Positions 10,252-54,700 of a DNA stretch of 64,000 bases are shown here, in pieces (positions within the stretch are counted from its first letter, which is position 1; every line of letters begins with the position of its first letter). Source of the stretch: Macrostomum lignano. Lineage: Eukaryota. The notes under the pieces are model-generated. The model was not told where the DNA came from. It saw only the letters and a program-made list of their open reading frames with translations, and made no database searches. The DNA is taken from positions 186,001 to 250,000 of the forward strand of contig NIVC01000807.1 in the NCBI GenBank assembly GCA_002269645.1. The letters are read 5' to 3'. The position numbers were made by a program, and so were the translations under genes.

Positions 10252-10612
<361 letters not shown>

Positions 10613-22800: not shown

Positions 22801-25800
22801 AGGGACTCCCTGACAGGCAGTGAGGAGCGCGGTGGGCACAGCGGGTTCAAATTTAATAGTCGCACTGTACGGGATTTGCAGTGGCTTGAAATTATTTTTT
22901 ATCACCATCTTCTTTGCGTTCTAGCAGTCCCGGATCCTGAGGTCCCGATTCTAGCAGTCCTGGATCCTGAGATCCCGATTCTAGCAATCCCGGATCCTGA
23001 GGTCCCGATTGTAACAGTCCCGGATCCTGAGATCCCGATTCTAGCAATCCCGGATCCTGAGGTCCCGATTCTAGCAATCCCGGATCCTGAGGTCCCGATT
23101 CTAGCAATCCTGGATCCTGAGGTCCCGATTCTAGCAGTCCTGGATCCTGAGGTCCCGATTGTAGCAATCCTGGATCCTGAGGTCTCGATTGTAGCAATCC
23201 TGGATCCTGAGGTCCCGATTGTAGCAGTCCTGGATCCTGAGGTCCCGATTGCAGCAATCCTGGATCCTGAGGTCCCGATTGTAGCAATCCTGGATCCTGA
23301 GGTCCCGATTGTAGCAATCCTGGATCCTGAGGTCCCGATTCTAGCAATCCCGGATCCTGAGGTCCCGATTCTAGCAATCCCGGATCCTGAGGTCCCGATT
23401 GTAGCAGTCCTGGATCCTGAGGTCTCGAATCTAGCAATCCTGGATCCTGAGGTCTCGATTCTAGCAATCCCGGATCCTGAGGTCCCGATTGTAGCAGTCC
23501 TGGATCCTGAGGTCCCGATTCTAGCAATCTCGGATCCTGAGGTCCCTATTGTAGCAATCCTGGATCCTGAGGTCCCGATTGTAGCAATCCCGGATCCTGA
23601 GGTCCCGATTGTAGCAATCCTGGATCCTGAGGTCTCGATTGTAGCAATCCTGGATCCTGAGATCCCGATTGTAGCAATCCCGGATCCTGAGATCCCGATT
23701 GTAGCAATCCTGGATCCTGAGATCCCGATTCTAGCAATCCCGGATCCTGAGGTCCAAAACCCAAAATCTACTTGGATTAAAAAGTGCAAGGTTGGCTCAC
23801 GAAAATGCAAGTTGCAAACTAAAAAACAGACGGTACCGTACTGGCGTGCGAGAAAGTGTCAAACAAGTGGCAGTCTAGCCGGGGGCATTATGCTTGAATA
23901 TTGGAAAATGCGGAGTTACTGTTAAAGGTTGGGGCAGAGTCGCCACTGCAGTACTGGGATATTGACTGTCTGTCAGCCCCTACGTCTAGTCTACCTGACT
24001 TCATTTGCTCAGTTGCTCCCAATCTGGAGGCCAATATTGCACCTCCCGCCCACCTTTACATATTGACTTGATTTTATAAGAGTCACGGGCAAAAACCCAG
24101 GGGAAAAAGATAATTTGGACTGCCAGTCATTGAACGCCCGTCGACAGCTTACTGTAAAACCTGTTGACACAGTTATTGCGCAACAGATTTGGAGGGCCGG
24201 ACAAACTGGAGATCCAATTTAAGGAAGTGTCACGGAAAGACGATACCTACCTGTCTCTCCCCACCCACCAGCAGAGGTAATTTGCGATCCCAAACTAGCA
24301 AAGAGGAAATGAGGGCAGTGCAGCTCAGGGATCTGTTGATAGCAAGCCCAGTCTGACCCTCCAGCTCCTCAGCATTCGGTTTCGGCTCCCGGTTGGGAAG
24401 TTTAATCACGTTTGTTAATTTGCCTGAGAGTTGCCTGAGGCCTAAATGATGGAGAGAAAATGACTCTGGCCATATATCCCCCCACACACTCGTCAGAGTT
24501 CAGAGGAAATGGAGTCTGATTGGGGATTTGATCTGCCACCTCTCACAGCCTTCTTGGGGCTGCTCACCAGGGTCTAGACTCTCTCCGATACAGCCCGGGT
24601 CCCCATTGAGACTGGAAAGGGGGATGAGGCGGGGGAAGACTTCCCAAATTTGTCCCGTCTTTTTGCATTCGCCAGCCACCTCGCCAGCGCACGCCAGCTA
24701 CCCCGCGGTCCCCTGGGAGGCGCAACCGAGACCGTGGCCAGGGTGCGGAGAAGATAATTAAGACCGCTAAATTCTCCGCCCCTCGGTGTAGAAGCCGTTG
24801 AAATTTTATTTTTTCTCTTCAGAGACAGCTTCATCGCGACCGGCATGCAGATTTTTTGTGTATTTTAATTCCCCCCCGGCTTGGCTTGGCCGGCCCGAGT
24901 ACGGATTCACTCCCGGCCGATGCGGTCCCGGAATTCCAGCTCTTGGCGTGCGTGCAAGACTGGGACTGGGCGCAAATCAAATCGACTCCTCATATGGAGG
25001 AAGACAATTTGAAACGCAGTGAGACAGGGAGGCGCGGGGGCAAGCGTAGGGAAAGGAATAGACGAAATAAAAAATGAAGTGAGAAATGCCTGTTGCAGCG
25101 TATGTGAGGCGACTCCGCTCATGAGAGCCGGGTCGTTGCGTAATCGCCACATAGGGCCAGCTGGCTAGCGAGTCGCGCGCGAAGCCCCAGTACGGCTCGT
25201 GTAGTAGTAAATAAAACGGAGGCTGCTTTTTTGAGAGCCGACCCTCCGCTGGGAGGTGTCGAGTGCTAACAAACTCGATAGAACAGACAGACGGACGGCA
25301 GCATCCTGAATGCAAATGAGAGCGCGACAGTCTGCGTGACGCATCGTCGAGATGCAGTATCCGTGTCTCTCCAGAGTAGCGTCCCAGTCGCATGATAGCC
25401 ACAAATCGTGCATTCTTCCCAGTTCTCCCGAGGGAATTCGACAAGACTGGACAATTTCTGATCAGTTTAGTCACAGAGCTCAACTAGCCAGTGGAAAGAA
25501 TTCGATAAATGAGTAACGATGTTCAGCTATAAATCTTTTAATCACTAAATGTAATCAATTCGAGCTGTGCTATGCAGTTAAATGCGATTTTTTACTGATC
25601 GTATTCAATCTTAAAGGCACATCCATCATCAATATGATCCAGTTTTGTTACCATTTGTGGATTTTTGCCAACTTAAATCACTCCAATCCCCCCGCCACCA
25701 TTGCAGCTGAAAGCCAGGGACAAAGACCTGATCCACGAGCTCGAGTACTCCATCGACGCCAGCTCGCCCGAGGAGTCGCGTCGCCACTTTGACATTCTAT

Positions 25801-28800
25801 CGGATGGCAGCCTGTCAATCAAGGAGCCGCTAGACTACGAGACCCAGGCCGTTTTCTTTATGCAGGTGAAAGTGTCCGACGGCCGCTTCGAGGACAAGAC
25901 CGTCGTAGAGGTGAACGTTGAGGACGCCAACGACAACGCGCCAGAGTACGAGGAGAGCGGTCAGCTGCAGATTCAGGAGGGACGCGAAGCCGGAGAGAGG
26001 ATCGGCTCCGTACGCGTCTTCGACCGGGACTCCGGGACGAGCGGCGAGGTAGAATGCGAGACTCGATCGCAGCACAACAACCGGCTCCTTAGCGTCAAGT
26101 TTGCCCAGCTCGACTCGCCAAACATGTTCTCCATCCACTCGACCAAGACGTTCGATAGGGAGCGCGACTCGGTTGTCACAGGCACGCTGGTGTGTTGGGA
26201 CCGCGGGCAGCCCAGCCTCACCAGCACCTACACCGCTCGAGTTGCTATATTGGACAAGAATGACAACGCGCCACGATTCCTGGGCAAGGACGCTTCCGGA
26301 ATCATCGAGGCCCAGCTGATGGAGAACAACCGGCCAGGTGCCATCGTCACCACCTTGAAAGCCGAAGACGCCGACGAGGGAGAGAATGCTCGGCTAGCCT
26401 ACCGCCTGGTTGGCAACGGAGATGAGGAATTCTTCGACATCGACAGCGTCACCGGCGAAGTCTCAGCTAGACGAAGCTTCGACCGGGAGAGGAAAGACTC
26501 TTACCGGCTTCAGCTTGAGGTGTCGGACGCCGGCCAGCCGGCCCTCACCGGCACGGCGCAGCTTCGAGTGAGCATCACCGATGAGAACGACAATTCGCCG
26601 CAGTTCAAGGGCGTCACCGCATTCCAGGTGACGGAGAACACCGCGCCGCCAGTTCTGCTGGGAGTTATGACTGCTTCGGATGCTGATGTTGGTAAGCGAG
26701 ACTGGCGGTGCTTCTATTTGATGCCTTGATTTAAAGTAAAGTAAGATAGAACATACAAGCGCGCCAATACTGTACGCAGGCACGCACTCATACACACGCT
26801 CACACAGGGTGAATGGAGACCCTGACTTTCTAACTGACAGACATGTACCCTCTCTGTGCCTTGGGGGTTGGTTGGCCCTATTGACCTATTGGATGTGAAT
26901 CGCACGACAGCTCCACTAGGTCAATTAAGGTCAATCGTGCACAAGCCCCGAATTAATGCGCCTGCGCATGGAATCAAAGCGTGAGATGGTGGCTCGTTGT
27001 GGTCCGAGATTCAGACGTGTTTACGGCTGAAGCCGCTCTGCTTACAGTTTATATTTAGTTTTTGATTGATTCTCGAGTTCTCTGTCCCAGTTTACTGAAG
27101 TTTATAGCAGTTTCACTGCTTACTCGTATGAATATTACTTGTGTTACTTACGTCTACCCTCCAACGAACAACGTCCAGGCTTGAACGGCCAGGTGTTTTT
27201 CACGCAGCTGTCGCACGCCCACATGGACCGATTCCGCGTTGACATGAATGGCAGTCTGGTAGTCACAGCCAAGCTGGACCGCGAGGACATTAGCGAGTAC
27301 AGCATCCCGGTGCGCGTGTCCGACAGAGCGGCGGCGCCGCACTCCAAGTCCACCGACCAACTCGTCCTGGTCCGCGTACTGGACGTCAACGACGAGACAC
27401 CGCGAATCATACAGCCAGCAAGCGGCGGCAACTCGACAGGTGGAAACGGCGCGGTTGTCACCATCAGCATCTACACGCACCATCCGGGCGCTTTGGTGCA
27501 GAAGGTTCACGCGGTTGACGGAGACGAAGGCGTCAACGGGCAGATTTCGTACAGCCTCACACAGGACCGCGGCTCGAAGTTTAGCATCGACGCGAATACC
27601 GGGGAGATCAAAGTTGCCAGAGCGCTGGATGTGTCTGACATGACTCGACACAAGCTGATGGTGCAGGCCTCCGACCGGGACCCTGTGCACCCGCGCTCCG
27701 ACGCCAAGGTAAATTGCGACTGCCCCATTCTGAAGCTGCTGTCCCATTCTGAAGCTGCTGTCCCATTCTGAAGCTGCTGTCCCATTCTGAAGCTGCTGTC
27801 CCATTCTGAAGCTGCTGTCCCATTCTGAAGCTGCTGTCCCATTCCGAAGCTGCTGTCCCATTCCGAAGCTGCTGTCCCATTCTGAAGCTGCTGTCTCATT
27901 CTGAAGCTGCTGTCCCATTCTGAAGCTGCTGTCCCATTCTGAAGCTGCTGTCCCATTCTGAAGCTGCTGTCCCATTCTGAAGCTGCTGTCCCATTCTGAA
28001 GCTGCTGTCCCATTCTGAAGCTGCTGTCCCATTCTGAAGCTGCTGTCCCATTCTGAAGCTGCTGTCCCATTCTGAAGCTTTTATCTAATGAGACTGCCTA
28101 TTTTCATGTTAAAATTGTTATAAAGTTACTTTGTTGATTCGCCATTTTCAATATGGCGAATTTTATTTGGACGGCGCAAAATGTTCAAATCACGTGACTT
28201 CAGCTACTCGCATCCAGCTGAATCATATGTCTATCTGCCAGCACTCAACCCTGGGAGAAGAAAGAGGGAGAGTCAGTAGGGGGAGGGGGCGGGCCACTCA
28301 AGCTCTGATTTATTGACTTTTTTGAGAGGTCTCAACTTCTATTTGCGCCATAGCCCATACTGGATATAAAAGCGGCGGGGTAGCGGCTTCGCTGGTGTTT
28401 GACAGTGGCATATTTGCTCTCTAACTCGCACTCTGCTGAGCCATGCGCCCAAGCCATTCTAGCGCCACTAACTTTAACGCCCAGAATCTGTGCGACACCC
28501 TGGCTTAGATATTAAATATTATACGAGATAATAAAATTGCAGATGGGAAACACCGATGGAGGAAGTCGCACCTTTATTTGTCTCTTTCGGGCCTATATAG
28601 CTGTGTGTCGGATAGAAAATCATTAATCCAAAATTAACTTCGGGAGTGGATTACGTAATCCAGGCTTTGACTACGGACTCGTGGCGACGGTCAGAGAAGT
28701 TTCTGCCCGGGGCCTGGCTAAGCGGAAATGAAAAAAAGCTTATGCCATTGTCTCTCGCGACAATGGGCTGCTAAATGACTTGCTGAGGGTGAACTGTGCA

Positions 28801-31800: not shown

Positions 31801-34165
31801 GCGGACGGTGACATCATGGGCGGTGCTTGGGGCGCTGGCGGCCCGACTGATTTGCACCGGCAGACTGGATCTCAGGTAAGCCTAGTGTGACGTGATGTAT
31901 TTTGGTTGCTCTCTAACAGTGACAGTGATTGTATTAGCAACGAGATCAATGGAGTATTTTGCTTAGCAACTGGAACTTTTGTGATTGTTTATCGCAGCAA
32001 CAGTATAGACATACTTTTTATCGCAGTATAAATGTTTAATCTTATCAACAAAAAATTCGGAGAGAGTCATTACCTTGGCAACCAGACCTGTAGGATTTTT
32101 CTCTTAGCAACTGGAACCTGCAGGATTGTTCATCTTAACAACCACTAAAGCCTTAGCAACCGGGTCCATTGGAGTGTTTTCCTTAGCAACCGGATCCATT
32201 GGAGTACTTTTTTTAGCAACCGGATCTATTGGAGTGTTTTCCTTAGCAACTGTGTCCATTGGAGTGTTTTCCTTAGCAACCGGGTCTATTGGAGTGTTTT
32301 CCTTAGCAACCGGGTCCATTGAATGTTTTCCTTAGCAACCGGTTCCACTGGAGTGCTTTCCTTAGCAACCGGGTACATTGAATGTTTTCCTTAGCAACCG
32401 GTTCCACTGGAGTGCTTTCCTTAGCAACCGGGTCCATTGAATGTTTTCCTTAGCAACCGGTTCCACTGGAGTGCTTTCCTTAGCAACCGGGTACATTGAA
32501 GTACTTTCTTTAGCAACCAAGTCCATCGGAGTGCTTCCCTTAGCAACGAGACGCATTCTCAAGACAATGTTCTCCTTAGCTTGTTCTGGAGACTGCTGAT
32601 CACTGCATCCCGTCCTTGACAGAGCCCAATCGTGACCACATCATTCGCTTCGCCCATCCACGAGGGCTACTGCCGCGGCGACATCGGCAGCGGACGCACT
32701 CTGCCGAACCCCAGGCACCTCCAGCATCAGCAGCAGCTTCAACACGCGGTCGTAAAATCGCCGACAGCAGCCGCAGGCGCTGGCGCTGGCAAGACAGGAA
32801 AAAGTGACCAGGTATGGTTGTTCCGAACACGGGACTTCCCAGATTTAACTGCAATCATACTGGAATCAAGTTCAAGTCTAGTAATTAGTTTTAGAGCTTT
32901 GTCAAAGCTATAATCGAGAATACTGCACCGTTCCTTTTTAAAGCTATGATTTCCATTTCTACTTTTTTTGTCTTTCCATCTGCTGTATCTGGTACTAAGC
33001 ACCCAAAATTTAAGGCAGCAGAGCAGCGCTGAGGTTAATGTGCTTGTCTGACTCTCACGCCATGCCCCCTCGTTCGATTACGTGCGCAGCTACATTCATT
33101 CGTGAGGCTTATGCATTAAAACATTGACCTAGGGGGTTGCCGAGCGATTCACAGTAGTGAGGGCCAACCCCCAATGCACAGAGAGTGTACATGCCTGGCG
33201 ATAGGAAAGTCAGGACCGCTGTACACCCTGTGTGAGCGTGTGTATGAGTGCGTGCCTGCGTACAGTATTGGCGCGATTGTGTGTGCTCAGGGGTCAGTGG
33301 AATTGGCAGAATTGCCTCAGCGTTGGTTGCGGGTCGGTCGGTGCCCACAGCCCTCCTGCGAATTTTTATAGATTATCATAATTCCCAACTCCCACGCCAG
33401 GTGAACTTTTGGCTCTACCAGATCAAAGAGGACGCTTCAACGCCGCAGCACCAGCTGCTGCAGCAGCAGTCGCACTGTGCAGCCACCAGCAGCAACTTTT
33501 GCACCATTGCTCGCGGACCGCATCACCCTTCGCCGTACATTGTACAGCAGCACCAGCAGCAGCACAGCCAGCCAGCTGAAGCTGTTGACGGAGCCCAGTC
33601 GGACAGTGGCCGGGGCTGCTCGGACGAGGACTTGTCCTCCGGCCCGGTGTACTACCAGCCATCGACTAATGCCGCTTGTCAGATGCACCGAGGCCCTCCA
33701 GTCAGCCACCGGGGTGAGTGCAACTGCTCCGGTTATCGCATCTGATTCTCGCTAGGCTAAGCAGGCAGCTAAATTGCAAACCTTGGGTCACCCCGTTTCA
33801 CAGCCGCCGAAGCTCCCAGTCCTGCCCATTTCGCTCCGCTCCCGGTGCTGCACTCGACCAGCATGGCCGTATCCGCGTCGACTCCGGCTCGCTGCGGCCA
33901 CCACTCAGTCTCCGGGCCGACTGCTCTGCCTGCGATTTCTCTGCCGTCTTCATTCGACGAGGACACCAGCAGGAGGCAGCAGCAACAGCAGCAGCATCAG
34001 CAGCCTCCGCCAGTCCCGGCACCGTTGCAGACTGTCGAGGAGGTTGCGGGCAGCCAGGAGACCGTGTCGGCGGCATCAGCAGGTGGTGGCGGCAGCGGCA
34101 ACGGACAGGCTGACCAAGTGTGCCGTCAGATTGACAGCTTGTTCTTCCGGGACATGCCGGTGTGA
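18961..34165 (+). CDS. Protocadherin, 7 extracellular cadherin repeats + TM + Q-rich cytoplasmic tail; spliced CDS join(18961-19827,25707-26691,27179-27708,31507-31875,32623-32811,33401-33713,33804-34165), about 1204 aa
   Basis: Signal-peptide-like N-terminus MPLSSWRELLTFAVALTTVA. Cadherin linkers DINDHAPRF, DVNDNSPEF, DANDNAPEY, DKNDNAPRF, DENDNSPQF, DVNDETPRI. Hydrophobic TM VIIIVILAAVSAVLAIILIIAITCV. All six introns are GT-AG with matching phases (0,1,0,0,0,1); total 3615 nt. Confidence 0.93.
22915..23755. repeat. 30-bp minisatellite (gtagcaatcctggatcctgaggtcccgatt)n, protocadherin intron 1
   Basis: About 28 units. Confidence 0.97.
25707..26691 (+). CDS. Protocadherin coding exon 2 (EC3-EC5, start of EC6)
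   Basis: ttgcag|CTGAAAGCCAGGGAC; LDYE, FDRE motifs; donor G|gtaagc. Confidence 0.95.
26752..27045 (-). mobile_element. tRNA-headed SINE, family A
   Basis: Reverse complement shows head gcagagcggcttcagccgtaaacacgtctga and central box cccccaaggcacagagagggtacatg shared with other copies. Confidence 0.7.
27179..27708 (+). CDS. Protocadherin coding exon 3 (EC6-EC7)
   Basis: gtccag|GCTTGAAC; LDRE and DGDEGVNG motifs; donor AAG|gtaaat. Confidence 0.93.
27723..28078. repeat. 19-bp minisatellite (cccattctgaagctgctgt)n, starting 15 nt after a splice donor
   Basis: About 19 units. Confidence 0.97.
30637..31440. repeat. 32-bp minisatellite (atggagttgcgcgcttaatctagagactggct)n
   Basis: About 25 units. 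Confidence 0.97.
31507..31875 (+). CDS. Protocadherin coding exon 4 (end of EC7, transmembrane helix)
   Basis: ccgcag|GTGATCTAC; hydrophobic stretch; donor CAG|gtaagc. Confidence 0.92.
32100..32580. repeat. 29/30-bp minisatellite (ttagcaaccgggtccattggagtgttttcc)n
   Basis: About 15 units. Confidence 0.93.
32623..32811 (+). CDS. Protocadherin coding exon 5 (cytoplasmic)
   Basis: ttgacag|AGCCCA...GACCAG|gtatgg; 63 codons, phase 0/0, open frame. Confidence 0.75.
33017..33362 (+). mobile_element. tRNA-headed SINE, family A
   Basis: Head gcagagcagc...gttcgattac; central gagggccaacccccaatgcacagagagtgtacatgcc. Confidence 0.72.
33401..33713 (+). CDS. Protocadherin coding exon 6 (cytoplasmic, DSGRGCSD motif)
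   Basis: cgccag|GTGAAC...CGGG|gtgagt; open frame with a delta-protocadherin-like DSGRG motif. Confidence 0.82.
33804..34165 (+). CDS. Protocadherin last coding exon, ends ...QIDSLFFRDMPV*
   Basis: tttcacag|CC after a 90-nt intron; phase 1 matches exon 6; TGA at 34163-34165. Confidence 0.78.
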
Positions 34166-36147: not shown

Positions 36148-36600
36148 CTAGAAAGAATTTTCTGGGAATTTTCCGGAATTTTCATCTTCGTCTCGTTCTT
36201 CAGCTTCGCAGTCATCGAATTCGCATTCGAAATCTTCGCTCGATGGCAGCTCGATGACGACAGTGGCAAGGCCGTCCGAGCGGTCAGCGCGGCCGTGTCG
36301 GCCACTTCGGTTTCGGGCCAGACGCAGCAGTTCGGTTGCTGGATTCTTCCCGACACCGGACTCCTCGGTGAGGCTGTCGCCAATGCAAGCGACCGCTTCG
36401 TCGGGTTCCACGGCGTTCCAGAGCCCGGGCGAGCCGAGCAAAACCAGACGGTCGGCTGGCGCCAGCTGCACCGCGGCAACCTCCGGCAAGCCGGTCAAAC
36501 TGGCTGGCAAAGTCGGCATTGTCGGCGATGCCCAAGCGACGTCGGTCAACCGATCGACGGACCATTTGAGTCCGACTCGACCGAAAGCGCGAGTGGCCTC
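36148..36600 (-). CDS. PDP-like exon 4 (to stop)
   Basis: cccccctcag|GAGGCCACTCGCGCTTTC; RAFG, KWSVD, GSPGLW motifs; acidic C-terminal tail. Confidence 0.87.
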   Translation of the reverse strand, partial: EATRAFGRVGLKWSVDRLTDVAWASPTMPTLPASLTGLPEVAAVQLAPADRLVLLGSPGLWNAVEPDEAVACIGDSLTEESGVGKNPATELLRLARNRSGRHGRADRSDGLATVVIELPSSEDFECEFDDCEAEERDEDENSGKFPENSF

Positions 36601-39072
36601 CTGAGGGGGGGGGGCAGTGTTCCGGTGACGTTTCGTCCTTCCCAGGACTGATGCAAACACCAATAATTAAAGGGTTTTATTCCAAAAAGCATCCTCAAAG
36701 GTCTATCGTTGGCAGAGCAGCTCAGCGGTAAACACGTCTGACTTTCGCGCCACGACCCCTGGTTCGATTCCGCGAGCGGCCGCATTCGTTTGGGGCTGGT
36801 GCTTATCGTGCCATTCACACCCGTGAGGGCCAACCCCCAAGGCACAGAGAGTGTACATGCCTGACGATTAGTATGTCAGGGTTGCTGTGCACCCTGTGTG
36901 AGCGTGCGTATCAGTATTGGCGCGCTTGCAGGTACTCAGGAGTCTGCCGAATGGGCAGAATTCCTTCAGTACTGGTTGTGGGACGATGTCGCACCAGATT
37001 GCTCACAACCATCCAGCCAATATGTACTTTTTGATTTACTTCACTTATTTAAATATATTTGAGGGCTTCGTTTCAATGAAATTAAGGCCATTGCAAGCTA
37101 AACGATCTTTTTCCTACCTGTTCGCCAAGGAAGCAGTTCCGAGCAAACAGGCCGGCCCGAGCTGCTGGCTCTGGGAAACGCTGCGCTAGGCGCCTCACCT
37201 CCCGCCAGTTCTCGATGGTATGCGGCGCCACATGTCGGCGCCAGTCCCAAGTGGCACCAGTGGCGCTAACTGACCCGATAACGGCAGCTCCGTCCCCGAT
37301 TTGAGCGATTCGAAGGCACCGCCCGCCACTGCGGACGGACGTTTCCATAGAAACGGCGGTGCCAACTGCTCCGGTCTGGGCCAGTCGGCGGGCCCACTCG
37401 CCGTGCATTGGGACGCAGCAGGGGTCGCTGGGGCTGGGCAGGGTCAGGCCGCACAGGTCCGCGTCTAGCCGGTGAAGTGCCCAGCCTAATCGGTCCTCGA
37501 CCGTCGAGACCGGGATTCTGTCCGACAGCAACCGATCGATGGCATCCCAGTGGCAATCGAGCAGGTCAGCCGGAAGACGGTCGGCTAACAGTCCAGCGCC
37601 TCCCAGGTGTGTCGCTAATTGCTGATGCTGAGCAATGTCGTCTCGGAGCGCTTCTTCCCAGCTGGCCTGGGAATCACTCAGAGTGCGATTTCTCCAGATG
37701 GACATACTGGGTGAGACACCTGCTGGGAGATGCAAGTTAGGGTTCCAAGGGCATATTCACATTGATTTTTGGGGCTAAATTGGAATCTCGGCTTGACTCT
37801 GCTCGTGCAATTAGCGCCATTGAGGGCCAACTCCCAAGGCAGTGAAGTGTACATGCATATAACGATAAATAAAGTTGGGCCCCTGTACACTCCTGCGTGA
37901 GTGTGTGCCTGTGCGTATGACTGCGTACGTTATCCGCGCGCTTGTGTGCCTGCTCATGCTCATGGCTCAGGCGGAATGGGCAGTAATGCCTCTCAATGTC
38001 GCTTAAAGTGCGCCGCGGTGCACACAGCCCCTCCTTCTAAAAATGTCCAGTCATCTACGAGCGTGAGACTATTGGATTTGATTGATACCTGAGTAAATTT
38101 ACGAGTTAGTCAGAGTCGGTCAAAAGGGGCGAAGATTGGAAATAGATTTTAGATTTTAGAATAACTTGGTTCTTATATGTGAGTTAGGAATGAAGGCGTG
38201 TCGGTCAAAGTATCCAGGTAGGCAGTTTCTGTCGGGACTATCAAAAAGCTGCATCCAGCTGCAAAATTCGTATCGTACCCTGTCTTGCGAAGCTGCAGCT
38301 GTGCCGACGCTGTCTACTCGGAGTGTGCAGGTGCGCCACTGCGGCATAGTCAGCTGACATTGCGGCCACAGCTCTGGCGCAGTCCGGGCCACCGCCGATG
38401 GCGTCAAACAGGCCGGTATAGAGAATGGTCCCGGGTGACGCCGAATCGGACAAAAGTCTGGCCGCAGTCCAACACGGGGCTCTGCTATCGCAGCCAAACC
38501 CGGCCGCATAAATGTTGAAGCCGTCGCTTCTAACGGTAGAAGCGTTGACTTCATCATCCGCCTCATTCTCTGTCCTTGGATTCGTTGGCGCGCAGCTGCT
38601 GAGCAAAGAGGCTCGTGACGGCGGCTGAGGCTGCTGCTGCGGCTTAGCGGTTGTCTTTTGTTCCAAGCTTCTATTTACTGTAATTTAAAAAAGCGATTGG
38701 GTCCCCGCTGTATCATCCATGTGTTATCGTGGCAACTGGAATATTTAGGGCGCACTTGCACTTGCTAGGCTCCTACACTTGCAAATTGTGTACGAGATTC
38801 ACTTGCACTTTGAAATGTCAAATGGAGCAAGTTTACGGTCTTTCAATTGGCCCGTACTTGTCCCACCATATATATGCTGATCATGCAGCGTGCAATAAAA
38901 TGTCTTATCAGTCTCCCCAGATGTATCTCCCCATTGAAATTGCCCATGCGCTGGTATACCCCAAGTAATCAATACTTGGAAATAAACTACTGTTAACTTA
39001 TCGAACTACATGTAACAAATAGTCGAACTTACCACCGAAGAGACAGGCTTGATATAAGCACGAAGTGAGCAT
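36148..39072 (-). CDS. Pyruvate dehydrogenase phosphatase (PDP)-like PP2C/PPM family protein, probably catalytically impaired; complement join(39072-39033,38677-38279,37719-37118,36600-36148), about 497 aa
   Basis: Recalled PDP1 motifs align in order: GLFDAIGGGPDCARAVA (GVFDGHAGCACSQAVS), WALHRLDADL (NAFKRLDNDI), IAQIGDGAAVIG (VANTGDSRAMLG), PHTIENWREVRRL (DHNAQNEREVERL), FLGEQEATRAFGRVGLKWSVD (LLGLLMPFRAFGDVKFKWSID), LTGLPEVAAVQLAPADRLVLLGSPGLW (LTAEPEVTYHRLRPQDKFLVLATDGLW). Splice phases 1,1,0 are consistent; total 1494 nt. Confidence 0.85.
36710..37015 (+). mobile_element. tRNA-headed SINE, family A (best-preserved copy)
   Basis: A-box-like agctcagcggta, B-box ggttcgattcc, central gagggccaacccccaaggcacagagagtgtacatgcc. 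Confidence 0.8.
37118..37719 (-). CDS. PDP-like exon 3
   Basis: cccagcag|GTGTC...GAACAG|gtagga; contains the IGDG motif. Confidence 0.85.
37740..38040 (+). mobile_element. SINE, subfamily B (5' head eroded)
   Basis: High similarity to 42575-42905 (gctaaattggaatctcggctt...gagggccaac...gtcgcttaaagtgcgcc). Confidence 0.75.
38279..38677 (-). CDS. PDP-like exon 2
   Basis: Open frame containing LFDAIGG; donor CAGG|gtacga, phase 1. Confidence 0.8.
39033..39072 (-). CDS. PDP-like putative first coding exon (MLTSCLYQACLFG)
   Basis: ATG followed by strong donor G|gtaagt; phase 1 matches acceptor ttacag|TA at 38677. Confidence 0.6.
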
Positions 39073-41938: not shown

Positions 41939-42516
41939 ATGGTTATCACTGGCTCTGAGATCAAGGCTGGCAGCCTCACATTTCTGTCCAACTTCGACTC
42001 TGGCAATCTCGCCCGGGTGGCCAAGCTCTCCTCCAGAGACGACTCAGATGAGCAGCAGGGCAGTTCGGCCTCATCTGCAGCTGCGCCGCCCCCGCCGCCG
42101 GCGCCAACCTCCCAAGCCGAGGCCAACCGGCCTGACTACGAGTACCAGGTGTGGACTCGCAAAGACGCCGAGGGCTCCCAGTTTGAGAACGAGAATCGCA
42201 CCTGGTTTCACTTCGGCGTGCGCGGCTACCAGCCAAACAAGCTCATCAAGCTCACCGTGATGAACCTTAACCGGCAGCAGCGTCTCTTCCAGCAGGGCCA
42301 CCAGCCGGTGTTTCGTGTCGGCTTCCCTGACGGCAGCTTCGCCAAGTGGCAGCGTGTCCGCGACCGCTGCTCCTGCGAGACAGTCGACGGCCAGTTCTAC
42401 CTGACCTTCACGCACCGGTTCGGCGCCAACGCCAAGGGCTGCACAACTTACTTCGCGTTCTGCTATCCCTGGTCCTACACAGAGTCGCAGGAGCAGCTGT
42501 CCGCACTGGACTATCG
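41939..42516 (+). CDS. AGBL5: AGBL5 coding exon 1
   Basis: ATG at 41939; donor CG|gttggt, phase 2. Confidence 0.92.
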
Positions 42517-45500
42517 GTTGGTTTAGCAATGATTGCCGCCTTCCAAAGTGGGCTTTCCTTGGGCTACCCTGAGGGGGGGCCGTAGTCCAGTGGTCTAGCG
42601 CAGCTCAATTCCGAGTGCAGGCACAGTAATTTGAGGCTAAATTGGAATCTCGGCTTGGCTCTGCTCGTGCAATTAACGCCATTGAGGGCCAACCCCCAAG
42701 GCACAGTGAAGTGTACATGCCTAATGATAAATAAAGTTAGGGCCACTGTACACTCCTGTGTGAGTGTGTGCCTGCGCGTATGACTGCGTACGTATCCGCG
42801 CGCTTGTGTGCCTGCTCAGGGGAGTCGGCGGAATGGGGGCAGTAATGCCTCTCACCGGTTGTGCGACAATGTCGCTTAAAGTGCGCCAGGGTACCTCTAA
42901 TAAAAGAATGAGCTACTCTAGTAGCAAAATTATTGAATTTTTAGCCGATGGCCCAATTTCGAAGACCCCTGGGTTCGATTCCGTGAGTGCGGCCGTATTA
43001 ATTTGGGGATGGTGTACGAAAACTTAACACCATAAAAAGCAGCCACGAGGGCCAACCCCAAAGGCACAGAGAGTGTACATGCCTGACGATTAGTATTGGC
43101 GCCTTTAAATAAGAATGTCGTCATGTTGACTATTTCCGAATTAATTTTTTTAGCCTTAATAAGTTCACGCTTGAAAACGTTTAATCTTACAAAAGTGCAT
43201 CGAATACATCGCACATATCTTGCTCCCGCTAACTCGCTAACTTATCTCTTTCTCAGCTTCCGCCACTGCGCCGCGATGAGGCCGGGCAAGGCTGGACCAG
43301 ACGAGATCTATTACCATAGGGAGCTGCTGTGCCACAGTCTGGACAGGCAGAGGGTGGACCTGCTCACCATCACCGACTGCCACGGCATGACTGACCAGGT
43401 CTGGCTTGCCTGTCTGGCAACTGCTTTTTGATCTCTGCATCTATTAACCATCTCTGCCTGCAGTCCCGATCCTGCAGTCCCTATCCTTTAGTCTCGATCC
43501 TCCAGTCCCGATCCTCAGTCCCGATCCTTCCAGTCCCGATCCTTCAGTCCCGATCCTTCAGTCCCGATTCTTCAATCCAGATTCTGACGTCCCGATCCTG
43601 CAGTCCCGATCCTGCAGTCCCGATCCTGCAGTCCCAATCCTGCAGTCCCGATCCTGCAGTCCCAATCCTGCAGTCCCGATCCTGCAGTCCCGATCCTGCA
43701 GTCCCGATCCTTCAGTCCCGATTCTTCAATCCAGATTCTGACGTCCCGATCCTGCAGTCCCGATCCTGCAGTCCCGATCCTGCAGTCCCGATCCTGCAGT
43801 CCCGATCCTGCAGTCCCAATCCTGCAGTCCCGATCCTGCAGTCCCGATCCTGCAGTCCCGATCCTGCAGTCCCGATTCTTCAGTCCCGATCCTTCAGTCC
43901 CGATTCTTCAGTCCCGATCCTGCGGTCCCGATCCTGCAGTCCCGATCATTCAGTCCCGATCCTTCAGTCCCGATTCTTCAGTCCCGATCCTGCGGTCCCG
44001 ATTCTTCAGTCCCGATCCTGCAGTCCCGATTCTTCAATCCAGATTCTGACGTCCCGATCCTGCAGTCCCGATCCTGCAGTCCCGATCCTGCAGTCCCGAT
44101 CCTGCAGTCCCAATCCTGCAGTCCCGATCCTGCAGTCCCGATCCTGCAGTCCCGATCCTGCAGTCCCAATCCTGCAGTCCCGATCCTTCAGTCCCGATCC
44201 TTCAGTCCCGATTCTTCAGTCCCGATCCTGCGGTCCCGATCCTGCAGTCCCGATCATTCAGTCCCGATCCTTCAGTCCCGATTCTTCAGTCCCGATCCTG
44301 CGGTCCCGATTCTTCAGTCCCGATCCTGCAGTCCCGATCCTTCAGTCCCGATCCTTCAGTCCCGATTCTTCAGTCCCGATCCTGCGGTCCCGATCCTGCA
44401 GTCCCGATCCTTCAGTCCCGATCATTCAGTCCCGATCCTTCAGTCCCGATCCTGCAGTCCCGATCCTGCAGTCCCGATCCTTCAGTCCCGATCCTCCAGT
44501 CCCGATCCTTCAGTCCCAATCCTTCAGTCCCAATCCTTCAGTCCCGATCCTGCAGTCCCGATTCTTTTCTGATCCCAACGCCGCCTCTGACCGTTCGCAA
44601 TCCACTCCGTTACCGCCTTCGCCGCAGGAGGAGGACCGCTTCGACGAACGCCTCTTTCTGGAGCGCAGCAACCCGCGGCCGCGCGCCTTCCCCGGCAAGC
44701 GAGTCTTCCTAGTCAGCAGCCGGGTGCACCCCGGCGAGACTCCGGCCAGCTTCGTGTTCAACGGTTTCCTAGAATTCATCCTTCGCGAAGCCGACGCCCG
44801 AGCCCGCCAGCTGCGCCGCCTGTTCGTGTTCAAGCTCATCCCCATGCTCAACCCGGACGGGGTCACCCGGGGTCACTATCGCACCGACAGCCGTGGTGTC
44901 AATCTGAACAGATTCTACCTGGACCCCGACCCGCAGCTCTACCCCACAATCTACGCTGTCAAGAGCGTGCTGGTTTATCACCATCGGGCCAATCGGAAAC
45001 AGGCTGCGCCTGCTAGGACCTCGGCCGCCTCCGCAGCCTCCGTACCCGTCCCGGACAGAACGGCGGCCGAGAATTCCTGTGCAAAATCGGCATCGGCCGA
45101 GTCGGCGCCAGAATTAGTTTCCGGCGACCCGGAGGACGCTGAGAGAAACATTCGAGTGAGTTCACTTGGTTGGGATTAGTCTGATGTACTTTTACTGTAT
45201 ACGGGTTGGCATTTCAAAGGCGCGGAGATAAATAATCGTGCGCTTACTGAATAGGCCGCGCTAATTAAGCGCCCACCGAACAACCGTTTACTGGCTAATA
45301 GAGCTCGGAATGAAGTCGCTCATATGTACGGCATGCCTAAACCACATCATACCTGCATGCATTTGAGCACATCTAATTTTTTGCCTCTCGCAACAACAAA
45401 AAATAAACCAAGGATCCAACTGAAATCCCACAGTCTCGCAATCGAGTCATGTCCCTAGTATTCGACGAGACCAAAGGCGAGAACGTCCTGCTACGCGAGG

Positions 45501-47179
45501 GCTCGCCTCAGATGGCCGCTGCCGATTCACCGATACGCAAGTCGCCGCTTCCCATAAAAAAACAGTCTGATTTCCGGCCGGGAAACGAGGGTTCCGATTC
45601 CGATGGAGATGACCCAGTGAGTGTTCGAGAATCCGTTTTATGAGTATAGGGTAAGAGACAATGAAGTGATAGGCTATAGACAATGGGTTGGTGACAGACA
45701 ATAGGTAATGTGGTGGTGACAGACCATAGACAATGGAGTGGCAGGGCATAGAAAATGTGTTGGGGACAGGCCATAGACAATCGGGTGGGGACAGGCCATA
45801 GACAATCGGGTGAGGACAGGCCATAGACAATCGGGTGGGGACAGGCCATAGACAATCGGGTGGGGACAGACCATAGACAATCGGGTGGGGACAGGCCATA
45901 GACAATCGGGTGGGGACAGGCCATAGACAATCGGGTGGGGACAGGTCATAGACAATCGGGTGGGGACAGGCCATAGAAAATGTGGTGGTGACAGGCCATA
46001 GACAATGGGATGGGGACAGGCCATAGACAGTGGTGCGATAGGCAATGGACACTAGGGGTGGTGACAGGCAATGGACACTAGGGGTGGTGACAGGCAATGG
46101 ACACTAGGGGTGGTGACAGGCAATGGACACTAGGGGTGGTGACAGGCAATGGACACTAGGGGTGGTGACAGGCAATGGACACTAGGGGTGGTGACAGGCA
46201 ATGGACACTAGGGGTGGTGACAGTCAATGGACACTAGGGGTGGTGACAGTCAATGGACACTAGGGGTGGTGACAGTCAATGGACACTAGGGGTGGTGACA
46301 GGCAATGGACACTATGGGTGGTGACAGGCAATGGACACTAGGGGTGGTGACAGGCTATAGACAATGGGGTCGCAGGCCATAGACAATGGGGTGGTAACAG
46401 ACGATAGACAATTTAGGGATGACAGGTCATAGACAATGAAGTTATAGACTATGTTTAATATGGTCTGAAGCCATAGGCTAAACAAACCACTGTGGCAGCA
46501 GCCCTAGCTCAGCTCCGTGCGTGCATCCTTCTCAGGTTCCCGGCGGTCCGGGCTCCTTTGACCCCGGCAACCCGACCTGTCCGCACCTGTGCGATCCGCG
46601 CCTGCTCGAGGTTCCTCCATCGGACAGCGGCATCGCCTACTATATTGACCTGCACGGCCACTGCTCAAAGCGCGGCTGCTTTGTCTATGGCAACAACGTC
46701 GAGCCGGACTCAGCAATGATGGAGAACTTGTTATACCCGCGCCTCATCGCTGCCAATTCTGCCCATTTCGATTATTCAGCCTGCAACTTCACCGTGCGCA
46801 ACATGTACCTGCGGGACAAGCGGGACGGACTGTCCAAAGCTGGCGCTGGCCGGGTGGCCATTTGGAAGCACCTGGGCCTGGTGCACAGCTACACGCTGGA
46901 GTGCAACTACAATAGCGGCAGATGCGTCAATCACCTGCCTATGCATCAGGTGAGGCATTGCGATTTCCCCCTGATTCCTGCTCTCTGCTTATTTGTTAGT
47001 GGGTTCGCAGGGGGCTGTGGGCACTGTTGCAAATAAAGACAACGATTGACCCACAGCCATTGAAGAGGCAAGCAGTCATACAGAGTGCCCCATGCCCCTC
47101 TGCTTACTGAATCTGTATATATCAGGGTTCGGGAAACTCCGGCCCGCGAAGCCTCTTTATCGTCTCGCCTCTCTCTCCT

Positions 47180-47243
<64 letters not shown>

Positions 47244-48262
47244 CTTCTCTCCTCCCTCTCTCTCCTCTCTCCCCCTCTCTCTCCTCTCTCCCCCTCTCTC
47301 TCCTCTCTCCCCCTCTCTCTCCTCTCTCCCCTCTCTCTCCTCTCCCTTCTCTCATCTCTCCTTTCTCTCCTTTCCTCCCTCTCCTCTCTCTCCTTTCCTC
47401 CCTCTCTCTCCTCTCTCCTCTCCTCTCCTCTCTCTCCGTTCCTCCCTCTCTCTCCTCTCTCGATTCTCTCTCTCTCTCATCTCTCTCCCTTCTTTCCTCT
47501 CTTGTCTCTCTCCTCTCTATCCTGTCTCTTCCGTCTCTCCATTCTCTCCTCTCTTTTCCCTCTCTCCTCTCTCCACTCTTTTCTCTCTCTTCTCTTTTCT
47601 CTTCTCTTTTCTCTACTCTCCCTTCTTTCTCATCTCTCTGTCCTCTCCCTTCTCTCCTTTCTCTCTTCTCTCTTCCCTGTCGCTTGTATCACCTCTCTCT
47701 TCTCCAATCTTCTCTCCCTTCTCTCTTCTCTCTTCCCTCCCCTCGCTTGTCTCTCCTCTCTCTTTTCCAATCTGCTCTCTCTTCTTTCTCCTCTCCTCTC
47801 TCCTCACTCATCTGGCCCGCAGCCCCACAAGCTGGATTCTTTATATGACTTTTGAGATAAGAAAGTTCGCGGACCTCAGGTACATATGAATCTGCCACCA
47901 GAGTGTACATATTCCCTTGACATGAATTGTGCATGCAGTTGATAAAACCGCAACAAATCGAATCTTTCCAGGATCCCCGACTGACGCCGCCGCCTCCGCC
48001 CGGCCCGCCGCCGAAGTACGCGCCGGCTCACTACCAGGAGGTCGGCCGGGCGATGGCGGTGGCCGCGCTGGACCACGTGCAGTCGAATCCTGTTAGCCGG
48101 CTCAGCAAATCCAGTTTAGCCGCCCTGCGCGACTGGACCCGGCGCTACCTGGCCTCGCTGCGCGGCGGGCCTCGCGCTGTGAAGACTTTTCTAGCCAGCT
48201 CGGCTGGCAGCAGCGGGCCCAGCCTCCGACAGCAGCAGCAGCAGCACTTTCGGAGCCGCTCT

Positions 48263-48296
<34 letters not shown>

Positions 48297-48916
48297 CGAC
48301 ACCTTCGACATCGTCGTCGGCAACGTCTTCTACAACTGCCGCTGGCGCGGTGCGTCGAGCTCCGCTGCGTCGTGCGGCGCCTCCACCGCCGACTAACCAG
48401 CAGCAGCGGCGCTCAACAACGAATAAAGCCACGGCGGCGGCCGCGGCAGCGGCGGCACCTCCCCCTCCCTCCCAGGCTGCTCAGCCGCAACAGCAGCCAA
48501 CTCCAGCTCAGACTCAGCAGCAGCAACAGCAGCCGGTACTGCCAGGCAGTCTGGAGCAGCAGCAGCAGCCATCGCTGTTCTCACCTCGCCAGCAGGCCCT
48601 GCTGTCCTCCGTGCCGCCATTGCGCAACCGGCCTTCAGTTGGAGTTGGCAGCTCGGCCAGTGTGCTGTTGGTCACGGCGGCGGATCTGGAGGAGTCCAAG
48701 GTTGCCCAGCTGAGGAGCTGCCTGCAGGCCGAGTCAGTGCCAGTCCGGCGCAGTGCCTCCATCGGCTGCCTGAAGCCCAACGGACGCGGCGGTGGCGGCG
48801 CTGCCGGTTCATCGTCGTCGACGTCTCTGTCGGGGCCGATCGCGGCAGTCAGCCGCTTCCAGCTAAGGCGGAAGGCCAGCGTGCCGCTGGCCAGGCCGCC
48901 AAACCGGCCGGACTGA
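41939..48916 (+). CDS. AGBL5: Cytosolic carboxypeptidase-like protein 5 (tubulin deglutamylase, M14D); join(41939-42516,43257-43398,44628-45155,45434-45616,46536-46949,47972-48916), about 929 aa
   Basis: N-terminal [41 protein letters not shown]. Zinc/catalytic motifs [58 protein letters not shown] match CCP5 as recalled. GT-AG introns have consistent phases; total 2790 nt. Confidence 0.95.
42575..42905 (+). mobile_element. SINE, subfamily B
   Basis: Head ggggggccgtagtccagtggtctag (A-box-like), shared central box, shared 3' body. Confidence 0.75.
42940..43102 (+). mobile_element. Internally deleted SINE family A copy
   Basis: B-box gggttcgattcc followed by gagggccaacccccaaaggcacagagagtgtacatgcctgacgattagta. 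Confidence 0.7.
43257..43398 (+). CDS. AGBL5: AGBL5 exon 2
   Basis: tttctcag|C...GACCAG|gtctgg; [12 protein letters not shown]. Confidence 0.92.
43455..44570. repeat. 14-bp minisatellite (cccgatcctgcagt)n filling AGBL5 intron 2
   Basis: About 78 units with recurring variant blocks. Confidence 0.97.
44628..45155 (+). CDS. AGBL5: AGBL5 exon 3 (HPGE, NPDG)
   Basis: ccgcag|GAGGAG...CGA|gtgagt. Confidence 0.94.
45434..45616 (+). CDS. AGBL5: AGBL5 exon 4 (variable insert)
   Basis: cccacag|TCT...CCA|gtgagt; 61 codons, phase 0/0; no recognisable motif. Confidence 0.7.
45670..46450. repeat. Fused 25-bp (gacaggccatagacaatcgggtggg)n and 26-bp (gacaggcaatggacactaggggtggt)n arrays, AGBL5 intron 4
   Basis: Directly visible. 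Confidence 0.93.
46536..46949 (+). CDS. AGBL5: AGBL5 exon 5 (DLHGH, TLE)
   Basis: ttctcag|GTT...CAG|gtgagg. Confidence 0.94.
47123..47879 (-). mobile_element. Second copy of the same hAT-type MITE, containing a CT-rich array (AGBL5 intron 5)
   Basis: cagggttcgggaaactccggcccgcgaagcc matches the reverse complement of 6001-6038. 8-bp TSD gtatatat / gtacatat. Confidence 0.75.
47972..48916 (+). CDS. AGBL5: AGBL5 exon 6 (end of catalytic domain + Q/P/A/S-rich tail)
   Basis: tttccag|GAT; [11 protein letters not shown]; TGA at 48914-48916. Confidence 0.88.
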
Positions 48917-49198
48917 CCGGTTGGGGAGGGGGGAGTTGCTGGGCCAGCAGCTGGCATTGTGGCCTGAAGAGAAGTGCATCGTCTGTTTATCAATAATTGT
49001 TTTTGCTGCGATCTGTGATCAGTATCTGTGCCGCTTCATTGCAGAGGAGTTACGCGTCATAATTTCGCATTCGAGTTTGCATTGCTGGTTGCAAGTGGCC
49101 TGTCTTCAGAGACTAGGAAATCATCGTTTATAAAGTCTTTTTTTTTATGTGTGATGAAGTTTTGTACAGCTTGCCGCTAGTTGGTTTGTCACTTTAGG

Positions 49199-51713: not shown

Positions 51714-54700
51714 CTGGGAAGAGTCGCCATGGTGAGATTTTTTTCAACCGACGGGGTAATTTCATCCCATCCCGCACGAGAGCGCACACCTGCACAAATA
51801 CTTTGGCCAGTGCTCCCTAAGCTACATGTTCCCTAAGCTACATGTTCCCTAAGCTACATGTTCCCTAAGCTACATGTTCCCTAAGCTACATGTTCCGTAA
51901 GCTACATGTTCCCTAAGCTGCATGTTCCCTAAGCTGCATGTTCCCTAAGCTACATGTTCCCTAAGCTGCATGTTCCCTAAGCTGCATGTTCCCTAAGCTG
52001 CATGTTCCCTAAGCTGCATGTTCCCTAAGCTGCATGTTCCCTAAGCTGCATGTTCCCTAAGCTGCATGTTCCCTAAGCTGCATGTTCCCTAAGCTGCATG
52101 TTCCCTAAGCTACATACATGTTTCCTGAGCTTTATAAGCTTCATGTTGACTGAGATAGATTTCCTAAAGTGGCTTTTTGGTACTAGTGGAATCGGGTCAG
52201 GAAATTATTGATATGCTTTGCACGTGGACTGATTTATGTTCCCGTTTCTCTTTTACTCTAGCCAGCCACTTTGTTTCCCAGCGCTACGGTCAGCCCGACC
52301 CCTTACTGGACCGCTGCTGCATGTGGGCGGGCGTTCGCATGCCGTTGGTTCGGAAAATCTCCAACAATTCGAAGCGAAACGCCGATATGTCGCCTTTGAT
52401 CTCGTTCAAGTCATCCTCTGTGACGCCCTGCTTGTCGTCCGACTTCTGACGGACCATCAAGTAGCGCTTGATAAGGTCGCGCATCACCGACTGAGGGTTA
52501 GGGTTAGGATTTCCGTTTAGTTTTAATGTGGGACGACATCAACAAGCAAACAGGCTTCTTCACCTGGTACCGAGCCTCCTTCTCGTTTACTTTCTTCACC
52601 ACTTTCTGCAACAGGAGAGATAAGCCACTTCTCAATTGCAAACATGATACAAAATTCGCTTAGATAAAATCTTGCAGAGTCTTACCCGGATGCTCTGCCA
52701 CTTGCTGCGCTGGTGCCGCTTAGAGCAGGAGCAGACCTTATCCTTGAGCCAGGCCATCGCGTACAGGAAAGACTTCGGGCTCGGGATGATGTTGAATGGC
52801 GTCGGCAGGGTGCCGCCTTCGTCAAAGTAGCTGATCCACAGCTTGCCGCGGGCGAACTTCCACTCCGTGTCTGCCTGGGCCTGCAGATGTGAAAAATCAG
52901 TTTTTTATTTTATATCGCCGCTCTACTTTGAGTAGCAGGCACTGAATATTAGAAACGTACCACAATCTCTTCAAAGCTGCAGTTCATCATGGCAATCAAC
53001 ATGTTGAGCAGGACGATGAATGTTATTGCAGAGAAGGCGCCGTACATGAGCTTGCCTGCGGGAGAGTGACGGCTGAGACTGGCTCTCGGGCTGCTGGGAG
53101 AGTGACGGCTGAGACTGCTTCTCGGCTTGGAGAGTGATGGGTGAGACTGACTCTCGGGCTGGGAGAGTGACGGGTGAGACTGACTCTCGGACTGTGAGAG
53201 TGACGGCTGAGACTGCTTCTCGGCTTGGAGAGTGATGGGTGAGACTGACTCTCGGACTGTGAGAGTGATGGGTGAGACTGACTCTCGGGCTGGGAGAGTG
53301 ACGGGTGAGACTGACTCTCGGGCTGGGAGAGTGACGGGTGAGACTGACTCTCGGACTGTGAGAGTGACGGCTGAGACTGCTTCTCGGCTTGGAGAGTGAT
53401 GGGTGAGACTGACTCTCGGACTGTGAGAGTGATGGGTGAGACTGACTCTCGGGCTGTGAGAGTGACGGGTGAGACTGACTCTCGGACTGTGAGAGTGACG
53501 GGTGAGACTGACTCTCGGACTGTGAGAGTGACGGGTGAGACTGACTCTCGGCTGGAGAGTGACGGCTGAGACTGACTCTCGGCTGGAGAGTGACGGGTGA
53601 GACTGACTCTCGGACTGTGAGAGTGACGGCTGAGACTGCTTCTCGGCTTGGAGAGTGATGGGTGAGACTGACTCTCGGACTGTGAGAGTGATGGGTGAGA
53701 CTGACTCTCGGGCTGGGAGAGTGACGGGTGAGACTGACTCTCGGGCTGGGAGAGTGACGGGTGAGACTGACTCTCGGACTGTGAGAGTGACGGGTGAGAC
53801 TGACTCTCGGGCTGGGAGAGTGACGGCTGAGACTGACTCTCGGACTGTGAGAGTGACGGGTGAGACTGACTCTCGGACTGTGAGAGTGACGGGTGAGACT
53901 GACTCTCGGACTGTGAGAGTGACGGGTGAGACTGACTCTCGGGCTGGGAGAGTGACGGCTGAGACTGACTCTCGGGCTGGGAGAGTGACGGCTGAGACTG
54001 ACTCTCGGACTGTGAGTGAGAGTAAACAATTAAAATATATTCATTTACGCGTCAGAAGATATTTTTAATGGATTTTACCTAACTACCTTCCCCCTGAAAC
54101 GTTATTAATTAATTATGGTGCCAGATGCGAAAATGAAAGTGATAGGAGGCTCTCAACGTTGTCAAATGATGATAAATCAACCAGTCCATTAAATAGCCGA
54201 CCATTACCAATGAATTCCGTGAACGAGTGCTCGTACTCGAGGTCGGTGTTGCTCAAATCTATCAGGCCGTAGGCTGACCAGTAGAGGGACTGGGTGATCT
54301 CAAACAGACTGTGGGGTTTGCAGGTTGCCATTGGTTATCGAGTAAAACGACATAATGGAAAATGTAGGCGGATCTCTGCAGTACTCAGAGTGCTACAGTT
54401 TTATTGTCGTTTGCGCTTCAAACCTACTTGCACTTTACGGTAGAATTCATATGAGATTATATTGGCAGCCTCTGACTTTCTGACATGGCTCATACGTATT
54501 TTAGTTAGCTGTTTTGCTAGAATAAATTGCATACCCATATGCATAAAAGCAACCCTATTTAGTATATTGGACTAGCAATCTGCGCCCCCCGTTGGGGAGG
54601 CAACAAAAAAGAAATAAAAATGTTTGAATAAACTACACGTAGGTTATGATCTTGTACAGTTATCATTTTTTGCATTTTAAGAGGAAAATAATTTTCTAAA

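Follow-up and report, generated by a model that had tools for sequence, protein, structure and literature searches.

Does a gene that has kept the fold of a metal-dependent phosphatase, with part of its metal-binding site replaced, still encode an enzyme, or does its product work in some other way? The question is raised by a locus on the minus strand of a 64-kb stretch of the Macrostomum lignano genome (contig NIVC01000807.1, positions 186,001 to 250,000 of the forward strand; hereafter the window, in whose positions all coordinates are given), where a four-exon gene (39072-36148) encodes a PP2C/PPM protein that is, by sequence and predicted structure, closest to pyruvate dehydrogenase phosphatase 1 (PDP1). 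The original prediction, made from the letters of the sequence, described the product as a PDP-like PP2C protein with a broken metal-binding site and as a candidate mitochondrial pseudophosphatase. On balance, we lean towards a functional gene whose PP2C product is inactive or strongly impaired; the inactivity we infer from the sequence and from published mutagenesis of PPM1A, and "candidate pseudophosphatase" seems a fair reading of it.

Enumerating every GT donor and AG acceptor around the originally proposed boundaries on the minus strand reproduced exactly the predicted complete four-exon frame: 497 codons ending in TAG at 36150-36148, with three GT..AG introns (Table 1). The spliced frame contains no internal stop, the remaining two frames carry 11 and 17 stops, and the GC content is 59-64% in the exons (47.5% in exon 1) versus 41-50% in the introns. 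Other open variants also exist (acceptors 37722 or 36597, and the donor/acceptor pair 37104/36637), and homology discriminates among them: two M. lignano proteins, P0001 and P0151, have the identical exon 2/3 junction (...FARQ|GVSPSM...), and acceptor 36600 preserves the LGE-xxxx-RAFG spacing typical of PDP-like proteins. The 496-aa model with acceptor 36597 and the longer models of ~514 aa from intron-3 variants were ruled out, because only 36600 preserves this LGE-4-RAFG spacing. A tblastn search of the whole window found no second PP2C locus, so that neither a tandem paralogue nor a canonical PDP lies there, and Rfam and ARAGORN made no call within or around the PP2C gene. We conclude that the locus holds a real protein-coding gene of M. 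lignano.

Pfam, a search of PDB sequences, hhalign and Foldseek all agree with the proposed assignment to the PDP-like PP2C proteins. The Pfam PP2C profile (PF00481) matched residues 275-444 only, at 41.9 bits (cut-off 20.3; E=1.3e-10); among PDB sequences searched with phmmer, PDP1 was best (5e-11) and the next PPM protein scored 0.01; and hhalign aligned residues 50-445 to a profile of 27 PDP-like proteins (99.8% probability, E=1.4e-28). AlphaFold2, given a 40-sequence alignment of PDP-like sequences that may bias the model, returned a predicted template-modelling score (pTM) of 0.74, a mean predicted local distance difference test (pLDDT) score of 71.7 and 144 residues with pLDDT >90, and only residues 1-45, 74-76, 138-194 and 473-497 were of low confidence. 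Searched with Foldseek, the model matched three PDP1 entries first (E 2e-23 to 7e-22, template-modelling score to the target 0.76-0.78), with other PP2Cs at 3.5e-13 or worse and TAB1 at about 1e-11; there were 92 PDB matches at E<=0.001, the best 50 of which are all PP2C-fold, and the top library matches that were inspected and bear names are PDP-like. The PDP-specific scaffold motifs pointed out in the original prediction are present (RAFGRVGLKWSVD, LTGLPEV and EVRRLAQRFPEP), and a check of PDP-type motifs recovered RAFGRVGLKW, LTGLPEV and NPATELLR, with the PPY of PPYLTA lost and the last segment shortened or ambiguous. Identity to canonical PDPs is about 22-28%. A neighbour-joining tree grouped the protein with P0070, another M. 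lignano protein, on long branches, and the sister group within the PDP-like proteins is not resolved by this tree. We place the gene in a strongly diverged branch of the PDP-like PPM/PP2C proteins that is restricted to its lineage.

We mapped the active-site residues onto PPM1A by a profile hidden Markov model alignment anchored on the canonical M. lignano PDP, by MAFFT and by hhalign (Table 1). The Asp-to-Pro change in GSPGLW lies at precisely the CCC codon first proposed, the change of RAFGD to RAFGR and the absence of a clear motif-1 ED were likewise recovered, and the proposed change of DGH to DAI needs qualification: Gly and His are lost, but the motif is not lost as a whole, since its Asp is kept. 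Ambiguity at the last motif (SDGLA) remains as first described. In the AlphaFold2 model, LATVVIE (458-464) forms the final strand with D456 just before it, as D282 stands before the last PP2C strand; MAFFT and tblastn instead place LATVVIELPSS on the PDP helix LSxxLSLP and D476/D477 on the RDD position. The D282 equivalent is probably kept as D456, with this alignment ambiguous. The full metal-ligand set and general acid H62 of PPM1A are not complete in this protein, whose PPM fold carries replacements at catalytic or metal positions.

The weight of these replacements can be gauged from PPM1A, in which D60, D239 and D282 bind the metal M1, and E37, D38, D60 and the carbonyl of G61 bind M2 (PMC3730172). 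In PPM1A/PPM1G mutants, D239A/K and D282A cut kcat 100- to 1000-fold, G61A about 10-fold and H62A/N about 6-fold, and D38A/V has only a slight effect (PMC3730172); the positions replaced here include ones shown to be important by this mutagenesis, as the original prediction had held. The protein keeps the PP2C beta-sandwich and the PDP-type scaffold around a damaged binuclear metal centre. P405 stands in place of the M1 ligand D239 and I107 in place of the general-acid His; A106 replaces the Gly with the M2-binding carbonyl, and S78 the water-mediated M2 ligand D38; R355 takes the place of the RAFGD Asp and N409 that of D243. The bridging Asp (D105), the Asp of the GD motif (D289) and probably the last Asp (D456) survive. 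Most likely the protein would hold at most one metal, at a site that resembles M2, like TAB1 and PHLPP2, and its phosphatase activity would be absent or strongly reduced. It could then act by binding a partner instead of by turnover, and that partner could be a phosphoprotein or a partner of the active paralogue.

The same residues bear on the possibility that the protein is an active divergent phosphatase or other hydrolase with a rewired metal site, in which D105, D289, D456 or D476/477 and their neighbours would serve as ligands. It is true that the bridging D105, D289 and one or more C-terminal Asp residues survive, that changes at D38 are slight in effect and that PPM1A D239K retains some cellular function (PMC3730172); other PDP-like proteins, from fungi, also lack the D239 Asp (with N, S, Y, H, R or T in its place), and this clade may tolerate change there more readily. 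However, proline is unable to coordinate a metal, five more conserved active-site positions are changed simultaneously, and neither of the precedents, PHLPP with its replaced D239 and TAB1 with its degraded site, is active (PMC12002173), all of which makes an active enzyme appear unlikely.

Support for the exon model and for several of the replaced motifs comes from other M. lignano sequences. An exhaustive HMMER search over 1.84 billion representative proteins returned only two near-identical proteins, P0001 and P0002, all others being at most about 38% identical; these two and a third fragment, P0151, are M. lignano entries of UniRef, and all three match exon 2 at 98-100% identity. A word-indexed search with a trimmed query retrieved P0001 and nothing else. 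The 331 aa of P0151 span the whole of exons 2 and 3, junction included. P0002 (180 aa) is identical at 180 of 180 residues to the window when exon 2 is joined to the internal acceptor in exon 3, an in-frame isoform without residues 147-231, which make up most of the poorly predicted PDP-type insert; the exact match to this alternative acceptor suggests transcript-derived evidence. P0001 and P0151 differ from the window over 331 aa by E19D, A170T, I175N, W204S, H309P, G336D and a one-codon deletion, and represent a second gene copy. Such a copy fits the known hidden polyploidy of M. lignano. The UniRef names of P0001, P0151 and P0002 ("Aldo_ket_red domain-containing", "Deacylase" and "Metallophos_C domain-containing") conflict with their PP2C sequences and look mis-assigned.

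How old is the loss? These independently derived fragments (P0001, P0151 and P0002) have DAI and CDSR just as the window does. GSPGLW recurs in the distant paralogue P0070 (A0A1I8F3J8), 32% identical over 225 BLASTP-aligned columns, which reads ILGSPGLWD; the two proteins also have in common RLDADLCG, TGAVG, QIG(D/N)xAAVIGS (QIGNSAAVIGS in P0070), AVACxG (AVACVG in P0070) and, in exon 4, the pattern ADRxxxLGSPGLWxxxxPxxAVACxG. Because independent sequences reproduce both motifs, sequencing error is an unlikely source of DAI and GSPGLW; the change from Asp to Pro itself needs at least 2 base changes. Since P0070 also carries GSPGLW, the loss predates an old duplication, after which both lineages kept long open frames, a history hard to reconcile with a neutral pseudogene. 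The change common to both proteins also speaks against an assembly error and against a pseudogene of recent origin. A search for a canonical PDP paralogue, suggested with the original prediction, found it in the same species: P0009, P0157 and P0158 (PAA49167.1, PAA46495.1 and PAA93896.1, in that order) have every motif intact.

Several points weigh against a functional gene for an inactive phosphatase. The copies differ in 331 aa by six substitutions and a one-codon deletion, not enough to reveal constraint; three of the changed motifs lie in exon 4, of which none of the databases searched has an independent copy; and the gene is not in the NCBI (PAA) M. lignano protein set of the collection, where only fragmentary UniRef models represent it. 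Moreover, over-expressed PPM1A D239K, 100- to 1000-fold slower on p-nitrophenyl phosphate (pNPP), still suppressed p38/JNK phosphorylation (PMC3730172), and a single lost ligand is therefore no proof of biological inactivity.

The proposed N-terminus bears on the location of the product. As a putative exon, exon 1 is the best available start, because its donor is the best among three upstream ATG-plus-phase-1 candidates and an in-frame TGA lies 9 nt 5' of the proposed ATG, as read from the sequence. No database protein covers it: P0001, P0151 and P0002 all begin with NRSL, where the full codons of exon 2 start, and the acceptor of this exon (38677) fits the trans-splice motif of the M. lignano spliced leader (SL). 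SL trans-splicing in M. lignano has the acceptor motif YTNCAG and concerns about 30% of genes (PMC8629364). By our reading of the sequence, the published 35-nt leader (…TTGCATG) joined to exon 2 would give an ATG with TAA as its very next codon, and no further Met comes in frame before M120. The original prediction had likened the acid-free N-terminus to mitochondrial presequences. That argument is not supported: a run of 18 residues without Asp or Glu has a chance of about 10% by our estimate, which assumes about 12% acidic residues, and basic and acidic counts, hydropathy and hydrophobic moment overlap those of other PDP-like N-termini without separation. Simple N-terminal features of this kind can neither support nor refute mitochondrial targeting.

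With these results, the proposal of a dead PDP paralogue at the pyruvate dehydrogenase (PDH) complex divides in two. Its first part, a PDP-like and probably dead protein, stands; the second, a mitochondrial pseudophosphatase competing with or scaffolding active PDP at the complex, is unsupported and, as a whole, improbable. The protein's sequence and fold are PDP-like, the species has a canonical PDP to compete with, and the proposed N-terminus is low in acidic residues, but its first basic residue comes only at position 16, crude presequence features do not discriminate, and all database fragments start at an exon whose acceptor fits the SL motif. In addition, PPYLTA has lost its PPY, the PDP-specific insert is predicted with low confidence and partly removed in P0002, and nothing beyond ancestry links the protein to the PDH complex (E2/E1); a scaffold or competitor role there is pure speculation. 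A wider version of this idea, a long shot, would have Macrostomum, and perhaps macrostomorphs generally, keep an old multi-copy GSPGLW family of dead PDP-derived phosphatases that compete with active PDP to regulate the PDH complex or another phospho-target; if true, such a family would constitute a pseudoenzyme layer on PDH control undescribed in any animal.

It is also very doubtful that the gene, in a polyploid genome with much duplication, is a duplicate in decay on which selection has relaxed, without function and with no more than incidental transcription, a view that could draw on its low identity to canonical PDPs, on its fragmentary models and absence from the NCBI set and on the scrambled look of the middle of the P0070 model, but that leaves unexplained a 497-codon frame open over four exons with intact GT..AG borders and 11-17 stops in the other frames (unexpected at such divergence without selection), core structural motifs that recur in a 32%-identical paralogue, a whole-codon deletion as the sole length difference between the copies in 331 aa (exons 2-3), and a confident AlphaFold2 core.

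Table 1 Features of the window, with the PPM1A correspondences of the PP2C gene product
Feature	Position	Strand	Remarks
Exon 1 (proposed)	39033..39072	-	ATG at 39072; 13 codons + 1 nt; donor GTG|GTAAGT; encodes MLTSCLYQACLFG
Intron 1	38678..39032	-	355 nt, GT..AG; acceptor TTACAG
Exon 2	38279..38677	-	Residues 14-147; holds CDSR and FDAIGGG
PPM1A E37/D38 = D77/S78	38489-38484	-	Changed (DS in place of ED, in CDSR)
PPM1A D60/G61/H62 = D105/A106/I107	38405-38397	-	Asp kept; Gly and His lost; one extra Gly after (FDAIGGG)
Intron 2	37720..38278	-	559 nt, GT..AG; one SINE-like repeat copy (core 37822-37841)
Exon 3	37118..37719	-	Residues 147-347; LDADLCG, TGAVGTA, IGDGAAV
Alternative in-frame 3' splice site within exon 3	37464..37466	-	CTAG|AC; alternative exon starts at base 37464
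PPM1A D146 = D289	37294-37292	-	Kept (IGDGAAV)
Intron 3	36601..37117	-	517 nt, GT..AG; C10 run directly before acceptor; SINE-like repeat copy
Intron 3 repeat copy, with tRNA-like head	about 36735-36900	+	
Exon 4	36148..36600	-	Residues 348-497 + TAG; RAFGR, LTGLPEV, GSPGLWN, NPATELLRLA, RSDGLATVVIEL, acidic tail
RAFGD Asp = R355	36579-36577	-	Changed (RAFGR)
PPM1A D239 = P405	36429-36427	-	Changed; CCC (GSPGLWN)
PPM1A D243 = N409	36417-36415	-	Changed
PPM1A D282 = D456 or D476/477	36276-36274 (D456, in RSDGLATVVIEL)	-	Alignment ambiguous; RSDGLA at residues 454-459
Repeat cores, five copies	33159-33178, 36825-36844, 37822-37841, 42684-42703, 43047-43066		Probable tRNA-derived SINE
Multi-exon cadherin gene	18961-28000	+	Several Pfam Cadherin domains; interrupted by long coding-looking minisatellites, e.g. 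22876-23925
Cytosolic carboxypeptidase (CCP/AGBL-like) gene	41939-49000	+	Pepdidase_M14_N 41939-42523; Peptidase_M14 about 44670-44920
Ion_trans-domain exon and upstream ORF	55801-56451, 62157-63212	-	Pfam Ion_trans match; upstream ORF without Pfam match
Long tandem minisatellite arrays	5318-8175, 10188-10799, 13678-14915, 22876-23925, 43428-44700, 47085-47889, 52971-54029, 62300-63000		

Elsewhere in the window, an interspersed repeat occurs in five copies with the core GAGGGCCAACCCCCAAGGCA (0 expected by chance), each about 250 bp around the core, and the PP2C gene carries two of them, in introns 2 and 3. A tRNA-like head (GGTTCGATTCC T-arm) on some copies makes the repeat a probable tRNA-derived short interspersed nuclear element (SINE); ARAGORN and Rfam made no call at the copies. 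A tRNA in intron 3 was considered and rejected, the tRNA-like stretch being part of the degenerate SINE-like repeat. The neighbouring carboxypeptidase gene is divergent to the PP2C gene across an AT-rich spacer of roughly 2.9 kb (GC 0.29 at 40-42 kb). By eye, the Ion_trans exon resembles a TRP channel and the open reading frame (ORF) upstream of it, which passes through a perfect minisatellite, a TRPC-type N-terminus. The minisatellite arrays yield spurious ORFs of 200-580 aa on both strands, with local GC skew of up to 0.73 (6-8 kb).

Among known systems, PDP1/PDP2 (PDB 2pnq, 3mq3, 6v0t) are the best match in sequence and structure, at about 22% identity. Common to them and the M. lignano protein are LD.D, SG.V, GD..AV.G, EV.R...HP, RAFG....KW, LT..PEV, FL.L...GLW and N.AT.L.R; in contrast, DGH, ED, RAFGD and SDGLWD of PDP1/PDP2 read DAI, DS, RAFGR and SPGLWN here, the PPY of PPYLTA is missing, and the C-terminal LSLP...RDDITV is shortened or rearranged. 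The canonical M. lignano PDP, of the same species and subfamily and 27% identical, differs in keeping EDRDGH..GD..RAFGD..SDGLWD..RDDITV intact and in its Arg-rich N-terminus. P0070, an uncharacterised PPM-domain protein, has the same GSPGLW and is the tree neighbour, but offers no recognisable equivalent of the DGH region, and the middle of its model is unalignable, perhaps mis-predicted.

Fungal PDP-like proteins from Mycena (H or R), Crucibulum (Y) and Tieghemiomyces (T) also lack the D239 Asp (P0108, P0149, P0097 and P0148), and in P0097 and P0108 the RAFGD Asp is missing as it is here; unlike the M. lignano protein, they belong to independent lineages with other substitutions, and they are uncharacterised. 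More widely, the D239-equivalent Asp is missing in P0051, P0056, P0097, P0108, P0110, P0118, P0148 and P0149 (from fungi, metagenome or Logan sources), often together with the RAFGD Asp, which suggests, at the level of sequence, recurrent and undescribed "dead PDP" lineages. A search of the full-text literature on pseudophosphatase, PP2C and pyruvate dehydrogenase phosphatase returned a review of the trypanosomatid phosphatome and no paper title on that topic.

PPM-fold pseudophosphatases are few and newly topical, with TAB1 and now PHLPP1/2. PHLPP1/2 have Lys at the D239 position (PMC3730172), and PHLPP2 is an inactive pseudophosphatase with a single Zn at M2, as TAB1 has a single Mn at M2 (PMC12002173). 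PHLPP1 and PHLPP2 resemble the M. lignano protein in having a PPM fold with the D239 position replaced, but they belong to another PPM branch, carry PH and LRR domains, have Lys rather than Pro, and are conserved across metazoa, whereas the family described here was seen only in M. lignano. TAB1, an adaptor pseudophosphatase, likewise combines the PP2C fold with a degraded site and is a structural match of our model; unlike our protein it is not PDP-like, shows no orthology to it, and has known partners in TAK1, p38 and XIAP. At present the locus amounts to a well-founded annotation and a testable hypothesis rather than a demonstrated new mechanism. A PDP-derived pseudophosphatase beside an intact PDP, in a transgenic flatworm amenable to RNA interference, would be a clean system for studying the role of a dead PP2C and for asking if a non-catalytic competitor can take part in PDH regulation. 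Set beside TAB1 and PHLPP1/2, the gene is a new, lineage-restricted addition to the known class of PPM-fold pseudoenzyme candidates, and not surprising in kind.

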